Assembly: GCA_028826165.1 (NCBI GenBank)
Contig: JAPDFW010000043.1
Location: 1-55,299 of the forward strand
Reading direction: 5' to 3'
Origin: Anaeramoeba ignava BMAN
Lineage: Eukaryota > Protista > Anaeramoebae
Length of the DNA stretch: 55,299 nucleotides
The notes beneath the pieces are model-generated. The model saw nothing but the letters and a program-made list of their open reading frames with translations. It made no database searches and was not told the origin of the DNA. The position numbers and the translations under genes are program-made. Below, piece by piece: positions 1 to 50,896 of this stretch (within the stretch, counting starts at the first letter, position 1; every line of letters begins with the position of its first letter).

Positions 1-14
1 TTATTTATGATTAG

Positions 15-1121
15 AATGTAAATTTTATAAAAAAGTTTTAATTTAAATTTGAATTTAATTTGATTCAAAATATTTTCCTTCTTTTTTTTAAAAAAAATAA
101 GAAAATGACTGGTTTGCATCTTGCTTGTTTACATAATTCTCAAATTGATGTTATTAGAATTTTAGTAATTTCTGGAGCAGATGTTAATGCATTAGATGTA
201 AAATAACAAAAATAAGATGATTTCCATTTTAAAATTATATTAAAATTTTCTTAATTATTTATTTAGAGAGTAAATTTAATAAAATTTTTGATTTTTCAAA
301 TTAATTTATTTTGATAAACAAAATTAATTTTAAAAGAGAGTAAAAATAATGAAATTTTTCATTTCGAAATTTTATTATTTATTAAAATAATTATTTTTAT
401 AAATTTTTCTTTTTTTAAAAAATGAAATTATAAAAGAACAAAACACCTCTTCATTACGCTTGTGAAAATCAAGTTAGTTTTGAAATTATTCAATATTTAC
501 TTGATAAAGGATCTGATCCAAATTTAAAATCAGTAAATTAAAATTAAAATTAAAATTAAAATTATAACTAAAATCCAAAAAATTAAAATTAAATAGAATG
601 TAAATTTTTGGATTTGGAATTAAATTTAAAAAATTTGTTTTTAATATTGATTTGTTTTTAATTTTAGTTTGTAAATAATTGAAAAAGAAAAAAATATCAA
701 ATTTTTTAAAATTAAATAATTTTTTTTCTTTTTAGGGACAAACACCTCTTCATCTTGCATGTAAATTTGAATGTGAATCTCGTGTTATTAATTTACTTCT
801 TAAAATGGGAGCTGATCCAAAAATTGAAGATGTAAAATAAAAATAAAAATAGAAATTAAAATTTAATTAAAATTTTCTTACTTTTTAGATTGTAAATTTA
901 TTTTTATTTAAATTTCAATTAAAATTTATTTAAATTCAAATTTATTTTAGAAAGTATTTTGTTAAAAAAAAATTATTTAATTTAATTTGATTTAATTTGA
1001 TTTGATTTAATTTAATTTCCTAAAAAAAAAAAATAATTAAAAATAGGGAAAAAAAGCTGTTGATTTTGCAAGAGAAAACAAATTATCACAAGAAATTATT
1101 GATAAACTTTCAATTCAATAA
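15..1121 (+). CDS. Ankyrin-repeat protein, 3' part (5' end outside window). Exons: 15-17, 102-197, 267-269, 337-339, 437-532, 597-599, 668-670, 736-831, 889-891, 951-953, 1047-1121
   Basis: Manual translation: N|KMTGLHLACLHNSQIDVIRILVISGADVNALD|R|R|NKTPLHYACENQVSFEIIQYLLDKGSDPNLKS|N|F|GQTPLHLACKFECESRVINLLLKMGADPKIED|I|K|GKKAVDFARENKLSQEIIDKLSIQ*. All introns are GT-AG and phase 0. Confidence 0.9.
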
Positions 1122-1309
1122 ATTCAAAAATTTTTAAAAAGAAAGAAAAAGAAAAAAAGAAATATTTTTAATTTTTAATTTTAATTTTAATTTTAATTTT
1201 AATTTTTAATTTTAATTTTAATTTTTATTTTAATTTTAATTTTGATTTTAATTTTTGATTGAAAATTTCAAATGAAGTAAAAAATTATTTTAAAAAGAAA
1301 AAAATTATT

Positions 1310-4272
1310 TTAAAGAAAATTCTTTTTCAATAAATGAATTAAGAAATTAACATTCAAAGCAACATGATCAAGTTCAAGAAAAATTTCTGAATTATGTTGA
1401 GCTTCCAAAATAGTTTCCATATGAAGATTAGTAACATAAAGAGGATTTGGTTTATTCTTATAACAAAGTTCGAAATTAAAAATACCAGGTGAAGAAGTAG
1501 TTGATATTTTGAAGTAAACAAAAGTTCTTCTTTCTTTTGGAACTTCTGAATCTGATAAAACTCCAATTTTCTCAAGTTCGTTATGAGAAAATTTCATTAC
1601 TTTCTTTTTTCTTTGTTGAGATCCTTTAAAAGTTTTTTGATTCTTTTCAAATGCTTGTTTTCTGACATTATCCAAATATTCCCTATAAATTCCAAGTTGG
1701 TTCTTTAAATAATCAAAATGTCGATCAACACTTTCTTTCACTGACATGAGTAGTGAAGATTCATTAACAATTCTTTGATGATTGATTTGTCTCTGTTTGA
1801 TATAATTTGTGACATCAGACCGAAGTTTTTTGAAATTATTATTTTTTGAGATAATTTTTTCTTTCAATAACTTCTTCATATTAAACATGATGCGTTTAAT
1901 CTTGCGATTTGCTTTTCTGTCTTTTGATGCCTTTGCTTCGTTCCTCAATTTCTGTAAATTTTTTACAAATATTTTAGCATCAACTTCTTCTTCCTTCAAT
2001 CCATCCAATAATTGTTGATAAATTGTTGCCAACATTTCTTTTGTTTCTTGATACATTTTAAGAACATTTCCTCGTTCTTTTGAGAGTGGATTTGCGTAAT
2101 GATTTGCTAATGTAAGTTGAACAGTTGGGTTTTGATCTCGATCAAGTTGTTTTGGTGCTTCTCCCATTTTATCAAGTGCAGTTTTTAAAGGATCATTTTC
2201 ATCTTGAATAACTTTATCTGAATATTTTGCAAATAGTTCATGAATAAAAAACAGTTCATTAAGTGTCACACTAATAGTCACATTCTCTGAGGAAAGTGCG
2301 AGAAATTGATCAAGTTCATCATCTGTTTCCAAGTCTGCAACATCGCAAATATCCTCAAGAAATATTGCAAGTTGTTTTTTTTCTCAACCATAAAATCCCT
2401 TAAAAATTGCCATATAAATTTCTTTTTTCCCAAATGAATCAACCATGTTTGATAATAACTGTAAGAGTTTTGCAAGAAGTGTTAAATTTCTTCTTGCATT
2501 TGGTGTTAATTTTCCTTCTACAATGTGATATGCTGTTGGGGTTACAACTGCTGGATTAAGAAATCTAAGAATAAAAAAACCACCAACAAGTGCAGCAATA
2601 TCATATTTATCTGCATTAGGGAAAAATTCAAGAGTTAATTTTCTGATTTGTTTACAAATTAAACGAATTCCATAAGGAACCATATCGATTTTGTCTGCAA
2701 TTAATTGTAATAACTTTAAAAAATAATTTTATAAATAAATTTTATAAATAAATTTTATAAATGAATTTTAATTTTAATTTTAATTTTAATTTTATAAATA
2801 AATTTTAATTTTGATTTTAATTTTAATTTTAATTTTAATTTTAATTTTAATTTTTAATTTTAATTTTAATTTTAATTTTAATTTTAATTTTAATTTTATA
2901 ACAAACATCATTAAATAATTCTTGTAATTTTAAAACTCTTGGACCTAATAATTCTATAACTTTTGGATGTTCAGCAGCTTCTTCATAAGTTACTTTCTTT
3001 TTCATTTCAGAAGTTATTCCAGTTCTTGATTCTTCTTCATTAACCCATTGTTCATAAATTCTAACAGGATTAATTTCAAGATTAAGTTCTTCATCAGAAG
3101 CAATAGCTTGAAGATGATCCGCCAATAATTTTTTCAAGTAAAGTTGACCAGGACCTCTTCTAGTATAAGTAAATAATAATTTTGTAATTGTAGTATTTGC
3201 TCTCAATAAAGTATTAGTATGTGTGCAATTTTTAAACTCAGAATAAAGTGCAAGTTCAAATAAATTAAGCAGTAATTTTTCTTCTCTTTGATCATAATGA
3301 TTTCCATAAATTGTAAACATCACAATTTGAAGTAATTTTTCACATTCGCCGGGATTCACATATCTTGTTACTGTCGCTATATACTTAGGCATGTGATACA
3401 TTAAATAGAATAATCCACTGTATTGATCCCTTACTCTCTCATCTTTTATTGATATTACTTTTTCTTCTTGATCTTCTATGTTCGATATTTGTACTTCGTT
3501 TAATGTAATTCGATTTTTGATTAAAAGTGCGATTTTTTGATCTAATTGTTTGATTTCTTTTTCAATTTCAAAGTTTTTTTTACTTTGAACAGATATTGCT
3601 CTTTTTAATTGGTTTAAATCATCAAGATCTAAAAATTTTAATTTTAATTTTAATTTTTATTTTTATTTTATAAATGAATTTTAATTTCAATTTTAATTTT
3701 AATTTATAAATGAATTTTAATTTTAATTTAATAAATGAATTTTAATTTTAATTTTATTTTTTAATTTAAATTTTAATTTATAAATGAATTTTAATTTTAT
3801 AAATGAATTTTAAATTTATAAATGAATTTTAAATTAATAAATACCTTTTTGATAATTCCCTGAAGTTATTTGTGGTTGTATTTCTGGGTTCTTTGTTTGA
3901 TAAATTTTATTATAATTAGTTTCTTTTGTTTCTTTTTCTTTTATATTTATATATATTTATTTTTTTTAAAAAAGAAAAAAGCAAAAAAAAAACACAAAAA
4001 AAATTTTTTTTATTATTTCTTTTGTTTTGTTTTGTTTTGTTTTAATTTTTAATTATTTTACTTTTAATTTCTTTTATATTTTGATTTTCTTTGTTTGATT
4101 CTAATTTATTTGATTGATTTGATTTATTTTCAACTTCTCCAAATGATGGTATAGGAATAATAAAATCATTTTCTTGTTCAATTTTTGGTGTTTGAATAAT
4201 ATTTGTTTCAATTTCGTTATTTTTTTCGATTTTTTCTTTGTTTGGATTAAGAAAATCTGGAATATTTGTCAT
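1310..4272 (-). CDS. IQGAP-related RasGAP-domain protein (Dictyostelium GAPA/DGAP1 type, RasGAP plus RasGAP_C), multi-exon, one apparent frameshift near 2340-2390
   Basis: Motifs LLRANT, YGIRLICK, GGFFILRFLNPAVVTP, RRNLTLLAKLLQ, N-terminal LDQKIALLIKNRI and C-terminal LNVNFLIHLLKKNF. Introns at about 3938-4061, 3629-3844 and 2714-2906 join ORFs 4042-4272, 2847-3401, 2384-2683 and 1310-2332. Confidence 0.88.
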
Positions 4273-23133: not shown

Positions 23134-24912
23134 TTAAAAAATGAAACAATTTTCTTTTTTTTTTTGATTTTGATTATTAAATTTTTTAATTAATAAATCA
23201 AATAAATTTGGATTTGTTTGATTTAATTGAAAATAATCAATTCCAATTTGAATTTCATCAATTATTTCTTGTGTAATTTCAATTTCGTTTTTAATTTGAT
23301 TTGAATAAATCCAATATTCAAATATTTGGAATGATTTATTACTTAATTCACTATAATCTGTAACTTTATTAGATTTATCTTCTGTTACAGATAAAAACAT
23401 TCCTCGATATAATTCACTTCTCATTATTAATATTAATTTAGGAAATTTATATTTCTTTTCTTTTCTTTCAATTATAAAATCTTTTTCATTTTCATTTAAA
23501 TAAATTCTTTTAATTGTTTCTTCTATTTTTTCATTAGAATTTATAATTTCTTTAATTTCAGAATATAATTTTGGATTTATTATTCTGTTTGAATAAATCA
23601 TTTCAAATATTTGATTTGATTCTTTAATTGATTTATTTGAAATAATTTCTTGAAGTTTTTCAATTTGATTTTGATTTTGATTTAATCTATATTTCAATAT
23701 TAATTTATGAGCTTCAATTATTTCTCCATTTTCTGTTTTAAATGAAATATCACAAAATTCTTTTCTTCTAAATAATTTTATCAAATCTTCTTCAAGATTG
23801 GAAAAAGAAGAAGGAGAATAATAAAGAAATGAATTATGAAAAGATCCACAAGAAACATGATAATTAGAAATATTTTCATTAAATCTTAATTTAGGAAGTT
23901 CAATTTGAATTGGAATTTTTTTATTTTTTGTATTTCCAGTTCCTAATTGGCCATGTTTATTATTTCCAAATACTATCAGTTTTGAATTAGAAGTTAAAAT
24001 CAAATTATGATTGTATCCAACAGAAAAATCAATAATATTATCATTTTCAAATAAAGATGATTTGATTTCAGTAAATTCATAAGTATCTTCTTGATTTTTT
24101 CCAAGTCCATTACATTCATAATATCCACATGAATAAAGTTTTCTTTTTGGATTTTCAATCAAGATTATTGAATGAAAATTTCCACATTGAATATCAATTA
24201 TTTTGCCTTTTGGAATATTTTGGACTTTGGTTAATTTTTGAATTTTTGGTTCTCTTATCGATTCTCCTAATCCAAGTCGACCATATGCATTATATCCGCA
24301 TCCAAATAATTCTTGATTTGAATTTAAAAGAAAAACAAATTGTGAAGTATTTCCTGAAAATATTTTAGAAACATTTTTCATCATTAAAATTGGTTTTCTT
24401 GTTTTTTTAAATGTTTTAGAATCAAAACCAAGTTGACCAAAATGATTTGAACCAATTCCATAAGCATTATGATTTGAAGTTAATAAGTAAATTGAATTAA
24501 ATCCAGAAGCAATATCTTCAATTATTCTATCGTTTGTATCTTCAATTAGTGATGAAATATTGATAAATTCTTTTGGAGATTTTTTTGGATTAATATCATA
24601 TCCTTTGGCAAATACATTTCCTTCTATTGTTAAAATAGCTTCATCTTCACAACAAACAGTTACTTTTTGAATATTTTCAATTTGGATTTTTGAAGGATTT
24701 TGTTTTGAATATTTTAAATATTCTATTGCTTTTCCATTTTCAAAAAGGAAAATTGTTGAGGAATTTGATGATGAAATTTGTTTAATTTGTTTTTCATTTT
24801 CATTTTCATTTTCATTTTCAAATTTAAATTGAATTGGTTTTTTTATTATTTTTGGTTCATGTTTTAAAATTTTTGGATATTCATTTTCACCCCAAAATAA
24901 AATTTCATTCAT
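23134..24912 (-). CDS. RCC1-repeat beta-propeller + tandem BTB protein, paralog 1; ends in CaaX-like CFIF
   Basis: GxNxxGQLG and CGxxHS RCC1 motifs; BTB motifs FCDISF...AHKLIL and DFII...LILIMRSELYRGMF. Confidence 0.9.
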   Translation of the reverse strand: MNEILFWGENEYPKILKHEPKIIKKPIQFKFENENENENEKQIKQISSSNSSTIFLFENGKAIEYLKYSKQNPSKIQIENIQKVTVCCEDEAILTIEGNVFAKGYDINPKKSPKEFINISSLIEDTNDRIIEDIASGFNSIYLLTSNHNAYGIGSNHFGQLGFDSKTFKKTRKPILMMKNVSKIFSGNTSQFVFLLNSNQELFGCGYNAYGRLGLGESIREPKIQKLTKVQNIPKGKIIDIQCGNFHSIILIENPKRKLYSCGYYECNGLGKNQEDTYEFTEIKSSLFENDNIIDFSVGYNHNLILTSNSKLIVFGNNKHGQLGTGNTKNKKIPIQIELPKLRFNENISNYHVSCGSFHNSFLYYSPSSFSNLEEDLIKLFRRKEFCDISFKTENGEIIEAHKLILKYRLNQNQNQIEKLQEIISNKSIKESNQIFEMIYSNRIINPKLYSEIKEIINSNEKIEETIKRIYLNENEKDFIIERKEKKYKFPKLILIMRSELYRGMFLSVTEDKSNKVTDYSELSNKSFQIFEYWIYSNQIKNEIEITQEIIDEIQIGIDYFQLNQTNPNLFDLLIKKFNNQNQKKKENCFIF

Positions 24913-45313: not shown

Positions 45314-48300
45314 TTAGTCTTTATTCCTTTCTTCTTCAGATTCATTTTGTGAATCTTCTTTTTCTGATGTTAATTCTGGGATGTATTCTGAATCTGATGT
45401 GTAATCGTTATCATCTTCAGAGTCTGATTCAGAATCTGAATTATAAAGTGAATATCGTTTGGAATTAAGTTTTATCACTTTTCTTAGGTTCATTTTTATG
45501 TTCATTTTATAGTCTCTCTTGAATTTTTTTCTTGTTTTATCTTTTAGGAAGTTTCTTTGATTGTCTTTGTTTTTGTTTTTTATTTCTTTTTCAATTCTCC
45601 ATTCAGTTTTTCTCTCATCTTGATCTTCTTTATTATCATAGTCTTCATTTTCATCTTGATTATCAATTTTTGATTCACTATTATATTCTTTGTTGATTTC
45701 AGATTCATTTTCATTTTCATCCTCTTTATCATATTCACTTTCATATTCACTTTCATATTCAATTTCATTTTCACTTTCATATTCACTTTCATTTTCACTT
45801 TGATATTCAATTTGATTTTCAATTTCATTTTCAATTTCATTTTCATTTTCATTTTCAATTTCATTTTCATTTTCATCCTCTTTATCATTTTCACTTTCAT
45901 ATTCGCTTTGATATTCAATTTGATTTTCAATTTGATTTTCAATTTGATTTTCAATTTGATTTTCAATTTGATTTTCAATTTGATTTTCAATTTGATTTTC
46001 ACTTTGATATTCATTTTCATTTTCACTTTGATATTCATTTTCATCTTCTTTATCATATTCACTTTGATATTCATTTTCATCCTCTTTATCATATTCACTT
46101 TGATATTCACTTCCATATTCATTTTCATATTCAATTTGATTTTCACTTTGATTTTCAATTTGATTTTCAATTTCATTTTCACTTTCATATTCACTTTCAT
46201 ATTCAATTTCATTTTCACTTTCATATTCAATTTGATATTCACTTTGATATTCATTTTGATTTCCAATTTCATTTTCACTTTCATATTCACTTTCATATTC
46301 AATTTCATTTTCACTTTCATATTCAATTTGATATTCACTTTGATATTCATTTTGATTTTCAATTTGATTTTCAATTTCATATTCAATTTGATTTTCAATT
46401 TGATTTTCAATTTGATTTTCACTTTGATTTTCAATTTCATTTTCACTTTCATATTCAATTTGATTTTCAATTTCATCCTCTTTATCATTTTCAATTTCAT
46501 TTTCACTTTGATATTCATTTTGATTTTCATTTTGATTTTCAATTTCATATTCACTTTCATATTCACTTTCATATTCACTTTCATATTCGATTTGATTTTC
46601 AATTTCATTTTCAATTTGATTTTCAATTTGATTTTCAATTTGATTTTCACTTTGATTTTCAATTTCATTTTCAATTTGATTTTCAATTTTATTTTCAATT
46701 TGATATTCACTTTGATATTCACTTTGATTTTCAATTTCATTTTCAATTTGATATTCACTTTGATATTCACTTTCATATTCAATTTGATTTTCAATTTGAT
46801 TTTCAATTTCATCCTCTTTATCATATTCACTTTGATATTCACTTTGATATTCATTTTCATTTTCACTTTCATATTCTCTTTCATATTCAATTTCAAATTG
46901 ATTTTGGTTTTCATCTTCTTTTTCTTTTTCAGATTCACTATAGTATTCACTTTCATATTCAATTTCAAATTGATTTTGATTCTCATTTTTGTTTTGGCTT
47001 TCTTGTTCATTTTGATTTACATTCTCACCTTCTCTTGTAAATTGGGATCGGATTTGTAAGGCTTCTTTAATATATTTGAGTGTTTTTTCATAGATTCCTT
47101 TGATTCCAATTTTTCTCAGCAATGTATTGGTATCATTTATTGGTTGTATTTTTCCGATCCATTCCTCTCTTATCATTGTGTATTCTTCACAAGTCCATAA
47201 AAAGTGATTGAGATTTTCTTCTTCTTTTTGACAACATGGACATGTTTTGGAAGTATTTTTCATGTTGTGGCTGTATCGGTTTAATCCGTTTGTGAATGAT
47301 CTTAGTTTGAGGATTATTGAACTTTGTGAATATTCTAGGTAAGGTTTCATTTTGAGTAACTTAGGTTCTTCCTTTATTATTTCAAAGTATTCCTTGGTTT
47401 TCCAGCTTTTTGATTCTTTCATATCTTGTAATCTTTGGATTAGTAGATAATTTTGGATATATTTTAGATCATCTTTTTCCCAAATTTGATCTACTTTTTC
47501 TTGTAAATTGGAGTCAATTAGGCAGAATTCTTGAAGATATTCCCTATCTATATCTCTCAACTTTTTCCTTAGTTTCCATTTTCTGATATTTATCTGAGTC
47601 CTGGAGTCTGGTGTGTTTGTTTCATTTCTGTATATTCTTACAGGGGTATGACGGTTTATCCTTAAAATTTGAGTTATTTGTGAATTAATCAATGTATCAA
47701 TTTGGTGATATTCCTTTTGTTTAAGTATTAATGTTTCTGTTCCATAAAGTATTTGTGGAATAATTACTGTTTTATATATTTTCATTTTTAAGTGATTATT
47801 TATGAATGGGCTCATTATAATTTTCAATCTTGTGAAGTTATTTTTTGCTTTTTCTAAATTGTGTTGAATATGTTTTCGAGGATCTAGTATAATTCCAAGA
47901 TATTTAATTTTATATAGTTTCTTGCTTATGACTGTTTTATTTTGATTTGGTTTGAGTCCAAAGTTTTTTAGTATTTCATAAATTATTTTAATTTTTTCTA
48001 ATGTGATATTTTTTGGTTCTTCTATTAAAATTATGAGGTCATCAGCGTACATTTGGACATGTTTTACATATGGTTCAATTTCCTTGATAATGAAATGGCT
48101 CACCATTGCAAAAATTATTGGAGACAGAGGATCACCTTGGTAGATGCCACATGAGTTACCTTTGTAATACTTGATGAGAAATTTTTTCAAATGGATGTTG
48201 CTTATGAATTTTTTTATTACTTTCCTAATGATTCTGTGGTCTACCGTATCAAAACATTTTTCAATGTCAATTGAAACTATGAATGGATTGATTGATGTAT

Positions 48301-50896
48301 TGATATTTTTCTTAAGTTCCAACACCGATATCCTTGAGTCTAAGTTTTTTCTAAATCCCATTTGTTTTGAGTTGATTTTTTCCCAAATATGTTCAATTTC
48401 CTCAAGGATTCGTTTCAAGAAAAATCTAGCGGTTGAGTTATTAATTGAAATGGGTCTGTAGTTTTTGATTTCTTCAGGGTTTCCTTGTTTGTAGATAAAG
48501 ATCATCCTTCTTTCTTGTATATATTCTATTATCTCATCATTTGGGTTACTTATCCATTTTTTGAACATTCTATTGATCGATTTTAGGAATTCTTGGTATC
48601 TTGAGTCTGTTTCATTTATGTAGGGATTTTTATACATGTCAATCTTATCATAGTCGCAAATTGAGTTATTTTTACATGTTTTGATTATTTTGCTTAATCT
48701 CTCAAGTGGAAATAATAGATTCAATTCTCTTGTGTCTTCCAATATTTCAATATTGGAGGTTTTAATTTTCTCAATTGTGATTTGTGAGGGTAGGAGTCTA
48801 ATTGAATTGATCATTTGTTGGAAATCTTGTTCCATTTTGGGTGTACCTAACACTACTCTTGTTTTCTTTTGTGTGATTCTTTTTATCTCAGCCCAGTAGT
48901 TCAATTCATTTCGATTATCAATTTCAATTCCCTTCATTGTTTTCTTCCATTTTTTATTCAATAACTTTTTCCAATTAAATTCTTTTTCTTCAAGAAAATT
49001 GTGGAGTTGATAATCAAGTTCACTTTTTGTTTCAATATGGATTGTATTCTTTTTTCTGAAGGAATTCTTCATGTCTTTTATTATATTTGTAGACAAAACT
49101 AGTTTTGAAGATGGGAATGCTTCTTCTTCCATTTTTTTTATGATTTTATTTTGAAATTCCTCTTGGGTGGGTTGGTAATATTGTAGTTGAGTGGTAATTG
49201 GAGTTTTGAATGAGATTTTATTCAGGAGCATTTTGTGATCAGACAATTTCCTGACTGTTGTATCTATTATTTGGGAATTGTTTATTTCTAGTTCATTATT
49301 AACACAGAAATGATCAATATTTCTGGTTCTCGATATGGATTCATTGGGGATTATTTTGAAATTTTGGATTGTAATTTGTTTTTCTATTTCCTCTTGTGTT
49401 AAATTAAAATCCCCTCCGATGATGTATTTCTCTGTTTGTATATTTTGTATTATTGTTTGTAGTTTTTTGAGCATTCCTCTTTGTGTTTTTTGTCTTAGAT
49501 AACAATTAATGATATGGAGATCAGTAATTTTTATATGTAATATATCTTGATCTTCATGTTTGATTTCTTCAAAAAATTTTTTGAATTCTTTTCTTATTGC
49601 AATACATAACCCACCTTTAGATTTCTTTTCTCCATAAGCTTCCTTTTGGAAACTTTCGAATTTTGTAAAATATATTCTTTTCTTTAAGTGAGTTTCTTGA
49701 ATTAAGACTATTTCAATTTTTTGTGATAACAAGAGTTGTTCCAATTCTTGTGTTTTTCCTAGTTTGAGAAGTCCATTTATGTTTATAGAAGCAATGTTGG
49801 TTGAATATTCCTCAATTGGAGATCTCTTTTTTCCTTTCAGTTTCTCTAATAGATTCTCATCAGGGTCGAGTAATTTGATTTGGATACTAGAAGGAATTCT
49901 TTCAATATTCTGTTTACATTCATCAAATATAGTTTGAATCATTGCCTTTCTATCCCAAATTTCCATTTTATGTTCACCCTTTTGGATCATTCTCAAGACA
50001 TCCCAATTCTGAATAGCTGATCTCGTTTCAAAAATATTCAAATGAGGTTTCTTAATTACAATTTTATTTGAGTTTTTGATTTTGATGATTTTCTTTTGGC
50101 TAAGATCAGTATATTCTTTAGAGTTTTTGTATTTAATCGTTCTCTTTAGAGTGGAATCAATTTGCCATTCATTTTCTTGTAATTTTTGTTTTATCTGATT
50201 TTGGAATTCTTGAATATTTCTTTTTGGAAGAGTATTGTATTCTTTATATGTTTTCAAATAAGTGTAGTTGGTCGATTTAAGTAAGAATTCTCGGAGATCA
50301 GCTTCGATTATCTTGAATTTATGAAGGTGATTTATTTCTTTGAAAATTATTCCTTTGATTTCTTCAGTAACGTAGTTTAGCTTTTCTTTATTGGTAATGA
50401 GATCATTTTCTTTGTCTAGTTTCAAGATAATGGGAGTTTTGAGCCAATTTTCAGAATCGAGTGTCTTGTAATGAATTACCTCTTCTTGATCAAATTCTTC
50501 ATTATGCGTTAAATTAACGGTTTCTTTTTCTTCTCTTAAGTAGAAATTTTCATCTTCGTTCTCTTCTTCAATAAATTCAAGATTGTCTTCTTCAAAAGAT
50601 TCAAAAAATTCACTGAAGTCATCGGATTTAGGATTTGAGGTGTCTATATTTCCATTGATAAGTTTCTTAAAATGATTTGAAATTGAAATTGTAATCTTGG
50701 TTCCATTTCGGATCACTCTCCTTCTCTCTTTTGCAGCTTTTCGAGGTTCTTCAACAAGGAAGTGTCCTTGACTATTTCTTTCATATTGGGTCCAATATCC
50801 TTTTATTGGACCATAATTCTCAATTAATCTTAAAATGAGATTTAAAGAGATAAAGGGAGAATCTGCAAAAATGAACAGATTTCCCCAATTGACCAT
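45314..50896 (-). CDS. LINE polyprotein: RRM-like N-terminus, AP endonuclease, reverse transcriptase, CCHC zinc motif, long acidic repeat tail
   Basis: APE motifs SININGL, LIQETH, GGDFN, IDH, SDH. RT motifs YRPISI, QMGFR, DIEKCFD, QGDPLSP, YADD, KYLG. Zinc motif CPCC..E...HFLWTC. Confidence 0.95.
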   Translation of the reverse strand: MVNWGNLFIFADSPFISLNLILRLIENYGPIKGYWTQYERNSQGHFLVEEPRKAAKERRRVIRNGTKITISISNHFKKLINGNIDTSNPKSDDFSEFFESFEEDNLEFIEEENEDENFYLREEKETVNLTHNEEFDQEEVIHYKTLDSENWLKTPIILKLDKENDLITNKEKLNYVTEEIKGIIFKEINHLHKFKIIEADLREFLLKSTNYTYLKTYKEYNTLPKRNIQEFQNQIKQKLQENEWQIDSTLKRTIKYKNSKEYTDLSQKKIIKIKNSNKIVIKKPHLNIFETRSAIQNWDVLRMIQKGEHKMEIWDRKAMIQTIFDECKQNIERIPSSIQIKLLDPDENLLEKLKGKKRSPIEEYSTNIASININGLLKLGKTQELEQLLLSQKIEIVLIQETHLKKRIYFTKFESFQKEAYGEKKSKGGLCIAIRKEFKKFFEEIKHEDQDILHIKITDLHIINCYLRQKTQRGMLKKLQTIIQNIQTEKYIIGGDFNLTQEEIEKQITIQNFKIIPNESISRTRNIDHFCVNNELEINNSQIIDTTVRKLSDHKMLLNKISFKTPITTQLQYYQPTQEEFQNKIIKKMEEEAFPSSKLVLSTNIIKDMKNSFRKKNTIHIETKSELDYQLHNFLEEKEFNWKKLLNKKWKKTMKGIEIDNRNELNYWAEIKRITQKKTRVVLGTPKMEQDFQQMINSIRLLPSQITIEKIKTSNIEILEDTRELNLLFPLERLSKIIKTCKNNSICDYDKIDMYKNPYINETDSRYQEFLKSINRMFKKWISNPNDEIIEYIQERRMIFIYKQGNPEEIKNYRPISINNSTARFFLKRILEEIEHIWEKINSKQMGFRKNLDSRISVLELKKNINTSINPFIVSIDIEKCFDTVDHRIIRKVIKKFISNIHLKKFLIKYYKGNSCGIYQGDPLSPIIFAMVSHFIIKEIEPYVKHVQMYADDLIILIEEPKNITLEKIKIIYEILKNFGLKPNQNKTVISKKLYKIKYLGIILDPRKHIQHNLEKAKNNFTRLKIIMSPFINNHLKMKIYKTVIIPQILYGTETLILKQKEYHQIDTLINSQITQILRINRHTPVRIYRNETNTPDSRTQINIRKWKLRKKLRDIDREYLQEFCLIDSNLQEKVDQIWEKDDLKYIQNYLLIQRLQDMKESKSWKTKEYFEIIKEEPKLLKMKPYLEYSQSSIILKLRSFTNGLNRYSHNMKNTSKTCPCCQKEEENLNHFLWTCEEYTMIREEWIGKIQPINDTNTLLRKIGIKGIYEKTLKYIKEALQIRSQFTREGENVNQNEQESQNKNENQNQFEIEYESEYYSESEKEKEDENQNQFEIEYEREYESENENEYQSEYQSEYDKEDEIENQIENQIEYESEYQSEYQIENEIENQSEYQSEYQIENKIENQIENEIENQSENQIENQIENQIENEIENQIEYESEYESEYESEYEIENQNENQNEYQSENEIENDKEDEIENQIEYESENEIENQSENQIENQIENQIEYEIENQIENQNEYQSEYQIEYESENEIEYESEYESENEIGNQNEYQSEYQIEYESENEIEYESEYESENEIENQIENQSENQIEYENEYGSEYQSEYDKEDENEYQSEYDKEDENEYQSENENEYQSENQIENQIENQIENQIENQIENQIENQIEYQSEYESENDKEDENENEIENENENEIENEIENQIEYQSENESEYESENEIEYESEYESEYDKEDENENESEINKEYNSESKIDNQDENEDYDNKEDQDERKTEWRIEKEIKNKNKDNQRNFLKDKTRKKFKRDYKMNIKMNLRKVIKLNSKRYSLYNSDSESDSEDDNDYTSDSEYIPELTSEKEDSQNESEEERNKD
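45700..47010 (-). repeat. In-frame 12-nt minisatellite encoding ENQI/EYQS/EYES/ENEI tetrapeptides
   Basis: Units GAAAATCAAATT, GAATATCAAAGT, GAATATGAAAGT and GAAAATGAAATT on the minus strand. Confidence 0.9.

Follow-up and report, generated by a model that had tools for sequence, protein, structure and literature searches.

Exons of three bases lie at the lower limit of exon definition by the spliceosome, and the known cases are isolated. In animals, 3-nt microexons have been described in cytohesin-1 (PMC6314551), MAP4K5 (PMC8632122), and Drosophila homothorax (PMC7392893), and plant microexons include 3-nt examples as well (PMC8831610). These exons encode a single codon in frame, possess normal GT-AG flanks, and frequently escape both annotation and read aligners; they mostly occur once per gene, and those of animals are often alternative. 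Another relevant organization is that of metazoan ankyrin genes, in which 99-nt exons follow an exon-per-repeat arrangement, one for each 33-residue repeat. Runs of very small exons are characteristic of Schistosoma MEGs, where symmetric microexons of 6-36 nt account for the greater part of the coding region in secreted proteins and variation by skipping has been proposed. Recursive splice sites, in turn, consist of a zero-length AG/GT exon, lie within introns of great length, and contribute no bases to the mRNA.

The DNA analyzed here is the start of contig C45 of the 42.8-Mb assembly of the anaerobic amoeba Anaeramoeba ignava, a stretch of 55,299 nt (the window) with a G+C content of about 20%. 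Positions 1-1121 are the 3' part of a Rho-GTPase/ankyrin gene, and we consider it likely, from the arrangement of its sequence, that the two loop-tip residues of each repeat are encoded by two separate 3-nt exons placed between ordinary short GT-AG introns, all in phase 0. These candidates resemble the animal and plant microexons in being single in-frame codons with normal GT-AG flanks of the kind that annotation and aligners often miss. However, they form pairs in tandem that recur at an equivalent structural position in each repeat and in dozens of genes, and they are flanked by strongly AT-rich introns of only 57-97 nt. The gene shares with metazoan exon-per-repeat ankyrins the use of one exon per repeat and phase-0 introns at the inter-repeat loop, whereas the A. 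ignava unit consists of 96 nt plus one or two 3-nt exons, with the loop tip split off. Runs of symmetric, phase-compatible microexons are a feature in common with Schistosoma MEGs, but 631 of the approximately 639 codons lie in exons of at least 72 nt and 8 codons in 3-nt microexon candidates. As in recursive splice sites, an acceptor and a donor stand nearly back to back inside an apparent single intron; the AG and GT are nevertheless 3 nt apart, the triplet would remain in the mRNA, and the introns are short, which places these elements outside that class.

Introner-like elements offer a further comparison, given that recent intron gain has been reported in A. ignava (PMC10710043) and that tandem, near-identical intron-like units are present at C1:409226-413275. 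However, the sub-introns of the window are mutually dissimilar, and the C1 unit family occupies one locus rather than being dispersed. In a search with window positions 1-1200 against the rest of the genome, only AT-rich simple repeats were similar besides the contig overlap described below. Literature searches retrieved no report linking Anaeramoeba to microexons or introners and none describing single-codon exons in tandem at a constant site within a repeat family.

The 5' part of the gene is found on contig C123. Exon 1 (L010:7138-8574; 479 codons) encodes a Rho-type GTPase domain (Ras-family Pfam PF00071), and intron 1, of 598 nt, separates it from the first ankyrin-like exon, which is 96 nt long and is located at L002:1292-1387, upstream of the part in the window. 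Window positions 1-620 overlap the end of C123 (L002:1500-2119) with 98% identity over 620 nt, and the start of C45 and the end of C123 therefore carry one gene split across two contigs. Every difference between the two overlapping copies, in what is a small sample, falls inside the sub-introns, and these differences comprise homopolymer lengths and one small cluster at window positions 215-225. The ankyrin assignment is reflected in the Pfam matches PF00023 and PF12796 of the deposited protein, P0001, and in the scores of the three 96-nt exons of the window (18-47 bits) against a repeat model derived from the genome's own arrays. The pre-mRNA would comprise 14 exons and 13 introns, with eight of the exons being single codons, and the predicted product would be about 639 residues long and contain junctions of the type ALD-R-R-NKTPLH (Table 1). 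Two neighboring features were also recorded: a 16-nt tandem repeat, AATTCAAAACAAATTT, with about 35 copies at L002:697-1269, occupies most of the 598-nt intron 1, and a 340-codon open frame on the minus strand (window 1310-2332) faces the 3' end of the ankyrin gene in convergent orientation.

Table 1. Exons, candidate microexons, and sub-introns of the 3' part of the ankyrin gene (window coordinates unless a contig position is given).
Feature	Position	Strand	Remarks
Candidate 3-nt microexon AAA	L002:1447-1449, C123		partner of AAT 15-17
Candidate 3-nt microexon AAT (N)	15..17	+	second of pair upstream of exon 102-197
Sub-intron, 84 nt, GTAAAT...AAG	18..101	+	
96-nt ankyrin exon KMTGLH...NALD	102..197	+	repeat-model columns 2-32
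Sub-intron, 69 nt	198..266	+	
Candidate 3-nt microexon AGA (R)	267..269	+	
Sub-intron, 67 nt	270..336	+	
Candidate 3-nt microexon AGA (R)	337..339	+	
Sub-intron, 97 nt	340..436	+	
96-nt ankyrin exon NKTPLH...NLKS	437..532	+	repeat-model columns 2-32
Sub-intron, 64 nt	533..596	+	
Candidate 3-nt microexon AAT (N)	597..599	+	
Sub-intron, 68 nt	600..667	+	
Candidate 3-nt microexon TTT (F)	668..670	+	
Sub-intron, 65 nt	671..735	+	
96-nt ankyrin exon GQTPLH...KIED	736..831	+	repeat-model columns 2-32
Sub-intron, 57 nt	832..888	+	
Candidate 3-nt microexon ATT (I)	889..891	+	
Sub-intron, 59 nt	892..950	+	
Candidate 3-nt microexon AAA (K)	951..953	+	
Sub-intron, 93 nt	954..1046	+	
Last exon GKKAVDFAREN...SIQ	1047..1121	+	24 codons + TAA stop 1119-1121

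All seven AG-NNN-GTA elements that a preliminary description had located in this part of the gene were found at their positions. The same description gave the large exons as exactly 96 nt, which holds for each of them (102-197, 437-532, and 736-831), and its intron range of 57-97 nt agrees with the measured lengths (69/67/97, 64/68/65, and 57/59/93 nt); its reading of the junctions as ALD-R-R-NKTPLH, LKS-N-F-GQTPLH, and IED-I-K-GKKA is correct. The placement of two elements per gap extends to all four gaps between ankyrin exons (4/4), giving eight elements in total. The eighth, AAA, had been predicted by the two-per-gap model and was encountered on the upstream DNA outside the window. No AG-NNN-GT element is present in the 598-nt first intron, which is not a junction between ankyrin repeats.

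The splice signals around the triplets are of consensus quality: AG directly precedes and GT directly follows all eight triplets of the window gene, and all of its junctions are in phase 0. Across the six genes of the junction table described below, donors after the microexon candidates begin with GTA in 31 of 35 cases (consensus GTAAAT), acceptors before them read TAG in 29 of 35, and neither signal is inferior to its counterpart at the large exons. In the six genes, the sub-intron lengths have a sharp lower bound of 56 nt, with a concentration at 57-90 nt; genome-wide, A. ignava introns are 91.86% A+T (PMC11550330). No stop codon was found among the triplets of the window gene (0/8), those of the six genes (0/35), or, genome-wide, those preceding a G-x-T-P-L exon (0/80). 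Judged by eye, G or C is commoner in the triplets (for instance, GAT, GAA, ATG, CAA, and TGG) than in the flanking introns.

Sub-intron interiors are no more similar to one another than shuffled controls, so that a recent duplication does not by itself account for the signals; that the introns can no longer be aligned suggests that the arrangement may be old. A recent tandem duplication of introns was rejected as an origin, as the sub-introns lack mutual similarity, and a dispersed mobile intron was rejected because of this same lack of similarity and the single-locus distribution of the C1 unit family. Alternative donors or acceptors were also considered as the source of the two residues and rejected: a TAA stop follows each donor after 7-9 nt, and an alternative donor therefore cannot supply them.

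The period of the repeat provides an independent measure of what the large exons lack. A 33-column ankyrin repeat model was built from the uninterrupted arrays of the A. ignava genome, in which 220 distinct repeat junctions have a complete loop in 209 cases, a loop one or two residues longer in 11, and a shortened loop in none (0/220). A direct join at every junction of the window gene would therefore be anomalous. The exons in the window cover columns 2-32, leaving two columns missing, and each gap holds two triplets; with the triplets, all 33 columns are filled and one extra residue lies between the helices, giving a period of 34 rather than 33. The comparison was extended to a table of 24 junctions from six genes with one 96-nt exon per repeat (the window gene, L060, L049, L043, L069, and L072). 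The exons of L060 likewise cover columns 2-32, and two triplets are present in every gap, whereas those of L049, L043, L069, and L072 cover columns 2-33, with one column missing and one triplet in most gaps. Altogether, the triplet count equals the number of missing columns in 18 of the 24 junctions, and one or two surplus triplets are present in 4. Two adjacent junctions of L069 have two columns missing with one triplet and then none missing with one triplet, so that their sums balance, and apart from this pair no junction among the 24 has too few triplets. The count of small elements thus tracks how many residues are absent from the large exons. Counting against this rule are surplus triplets in 5/24 junctions, all in genes other than that of the window, and the shared ancestry of repeats and genes within one family, owing to which the junction counts are not fully independent.

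A gene at C1:697-701 kb shows two other states of the same boundary. The junction between its 99-nt and 105-nt exons is a plain 60-nt intron with no element, and at about 699.8 kb (L040, minus strand) a candidate 6-nt AG-N6-GT microexon, GGAGAA (G-E), lies between ankyrin exons 921-1013 and 1312-1407, and covers in one piece the two loop positions for which the window gene has 3+3 nt. An additional 87-nt ankyrin exon is present directly upstream of the GGAGAA element.

The splice signals, the non-random placement of the triplets, and their fit to the repeat period are properties of the DNA itself. The proposal made in the preliminary description, that the triplets are single-codon phase-0 exons, gains indirect support from the column count, the avoidance of stop codons, the splice sites, and the minimum intron length. 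Under such an arrangement, the 96-nt exon would span the repeat from the G or N before TPLH to the D or S after the second helix, and each 57-97-nt intron would be recognized as its own unit (intron definition). Removal of the two introns flanking a triplet would probably be sequential, since simultaneous occupation of an acceptor and a donor separated by only 3 nt is unlikely; excision of the first intron would join the triplet to a large exon, after which the second could be spliced in the ordinary way. The mature mRNA would carry both codons, and their use would presumably be constitutive rather than regulated. The loop may also explain how the pattern spread, since it is the module boundary of exon-per-repeat genes, and a microexon arising once at this point could spread with module or gene duplication.

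A different outcome would be expected if the triplets were cassette exons, with skipping of one, both, or whole modules, either regulated or stochastic, varying the ligand-contacting loop tip. All introns are in phase 0, so any combination would keep the frame, and the residues encoded by the triplets fall between D and G-x-TPLH, at positions that Binz et al. reportedly randomized in 2003 in designed ankyrin proteins. Some junctions in other genes have one triplet beyond what is needed, and 5% of the loops in uninterrupted arrays are longer than the standard, which indicates that longer loops are tolerated. However, the splice sites of the microexon candidates are strong, unlike the usual weak sites of cassette exons, none of the uninterrupted junctions is shortened, which suggests that skipped forms are disfavored, and two codons per repeat would generate very little diversity. 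Cassette use, and with it the further idea in the preliminary description of a splicing- or recombination-based system that would diversify binding surfaces, therefore appears unlikely, and the DNA of the window gene, as far as its signals can be read, calls for nothing beyond constitutive splicing.

The public protein model raises another alternative, in which the elements would be relics, decoys, or stepping stones within one long intron and absent from the mature mRNA, the direct join being right. Using the upstream exon as query, the deposited protein P0001 ('rho family gtpase', 577 residues) was matched, and it was the sole match in the protein search with exon 1; its 90% cluster has one member, with no transcript-derived copy among the proteins searched. 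P0001 fuses the large exons directly (...DIRM/KMTGLH... and ...NALD/NKTPLH...), and this join is in frame. It is truncated at the contig end, with two residues read from the intron (...NLKSVN). The sole match to its ankyrin part was an unrelated protein with 44% identity that came from other samples, and when one 32-residue exon from another gene was used as query, all matches were large multi-repeat proteins, none of them the A. ignava model. Ankyrin repeats with short loops occur in nature, and a direct join is structurally possible.

However, P0001 is an automatic prediction, and read aligners rarely place 3-nt exons (PMC8831610, PMC7821500). The A. ignava RNA-seq data were mapped with HISAT2, and microexons are not mentioned in that work (PMC11550330). 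Relics would be expected to decay, yet the eight sites are intact between intron interiors that cannot be aligned; in addition, the triplet count tracks the missing repeat columns, and the triplets avoid stop codons. No triplet begins with GT, and there is consequently no regenerated splice site through which the triplets would be removed, unlike in recursive splicing. We regard the relic or decoy explanation as very improbable, and the expectation of the preliminary description that gene predictors miss the triplets is borne out by the direct joining of the 96-nt exons in P0001.

If the triplets are spliced as single-codon exons, A. ignava would offer a natural system for studying the recognition of very small exons amid short introns, and its public proteome would be systematically wrong at the ankyrin loop tips. 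Loop tips are the usual ligand-contact positions of ankyrin repeats. The arrangement would also bear on intron gain beside existing introns, and it serves as a warning that gene predictors and spliced aligners can drop codons silently. What makes the pattern noteworthy is its scale and regularity, together with the systematic annotation error that it implies.

The distribution of the motif within the window was compared with that expected by chance. On the plus strand of the whole 55 kb there are 14 AG-NNN-GTA sites, of which 7 lie within the first 953 bases. Among positions with AT-rich flanks, 6 motifs per 401 were counted in the gene versus 2 per 16,763 elsewhere in the window (Poisson P ~6e-11 for the enrichment in the gene), and the gene's antisense strand has none (0/397 such positions). 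The remaining AG-NNN-GT occurrences in the window have coding-like flanks with more than 20% G+C, with the exception of two intergenic sites. The spacing is also restrictive, since two triplets placed at random would divide all four gaps into three pieces each, none below 56 nt, with a probability of ~3e-6.

At the genome level, a pattern of two triplets, a 50-95-nt intron, and a G-x-T-P-L/F exon start gave 60 matches on more than 30 contigs, compared with 1 in the reversed control. The corresponding pattern with one AT-flanked triplet and the same exon start occurs 80 times genome-wide versus 0 in the control. Both ankyrin-linked patterns are narrow, and 60 and 80 are therefore lower bounds. 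In contrast, a raw pair of AG-NNN-GTA elements 45-75 nt apart is not enriched (1,391 versus 1,723 in the reversed control), because coding DNA dominates both the pattern and the control, and pattern counts are informative only where AT-rich flanks or an ankyrin exon start are required. Judged by these sequence patterns, the same layout appears to recur in dozens of A. ignava ankyrin genes. The genome contains at least 7,824 ankyrin-repeat candidates, and most of the best-scoring ones lie in long uninterrupted frames. For the motifs of the window gene chance is excluded: a genome-wide background of matches in AT-rich DNA does exist (1,482 strict AT-flanked AG-NNN-GTA sites versus 714 in the reversed control), but chance has practically no probability against a local rate about 100 times the background, strand-specific sites, the spacing rule, and the near absence of ankyrin-linked patterns from the controls.

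It is possible, although doubtful, that a process in A. ignava creates and spreads single-codon exons, with units of intron plus codon that would multiply locally and be kept alike while the codon varies freely. If the units of the C1 locus were spliced, they would represent a new mode of intron gain or codon-by-codon protein variation, and the ankyrin loop-tip microexons could be older, fixed products of the same process.

Several further arrays and repeats were observed on C1, on C2, and in the window. At C1:409226-413275 (minus strand; L013, L029, and L037), about 35 consecutive AG-NNN-GT units are flanked by a coiled-coil-like exon on one side and a gene's last exon on the other. The units are separated by an intron-like repeat of about 75 nt, GTAAATAATTAAAT...TTTAATAAATAG, and a stretch of (ATT)n of about 1 kb breaks up the chain. 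The NNN columns are the most variable of the chain, with 1.96, 1.71, and 1.0 bits versus a mean column entropy of 0.22; no NNN in the chain is a stop codon, and a few units have broken donors. Of 19 genome matches to this unit family, 18 are located at the same locus. Further runs of AG-NNN-GTAAAT, with elements about 60-90 nt apart, were detected at C1:1057917-1073173 (-), C1:942332-942802 (-), C1:1796385-1797786 (+), and C2:7159-8603 (-), some of them having a conserved intron-like unit of their own (...TTATCTTTATTAAAATAG + NNN).

In the middle of the window, the context ATTAAATCTTAATTTAG-GAA-GTTCAATTTGAAT is present in five copies, at positions 23895 and 26233 on the plus strand and 28384, 30374, and 37090 on the minus strand, and a repeat of about 555 nt occupies 33.7-34.8 kb (33696, 34254, and 34809, plus strand). 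These repeated contexts, together with the 555-nt repeat, suggest a duplicated gene family or a possible mobile element. Toward the end of the window, a 1,860-codon open frame is located on the minus strand at 45314-50896, and the G+C content reaches 29-34% at 48-54 kb versus about 20% elsewhere.
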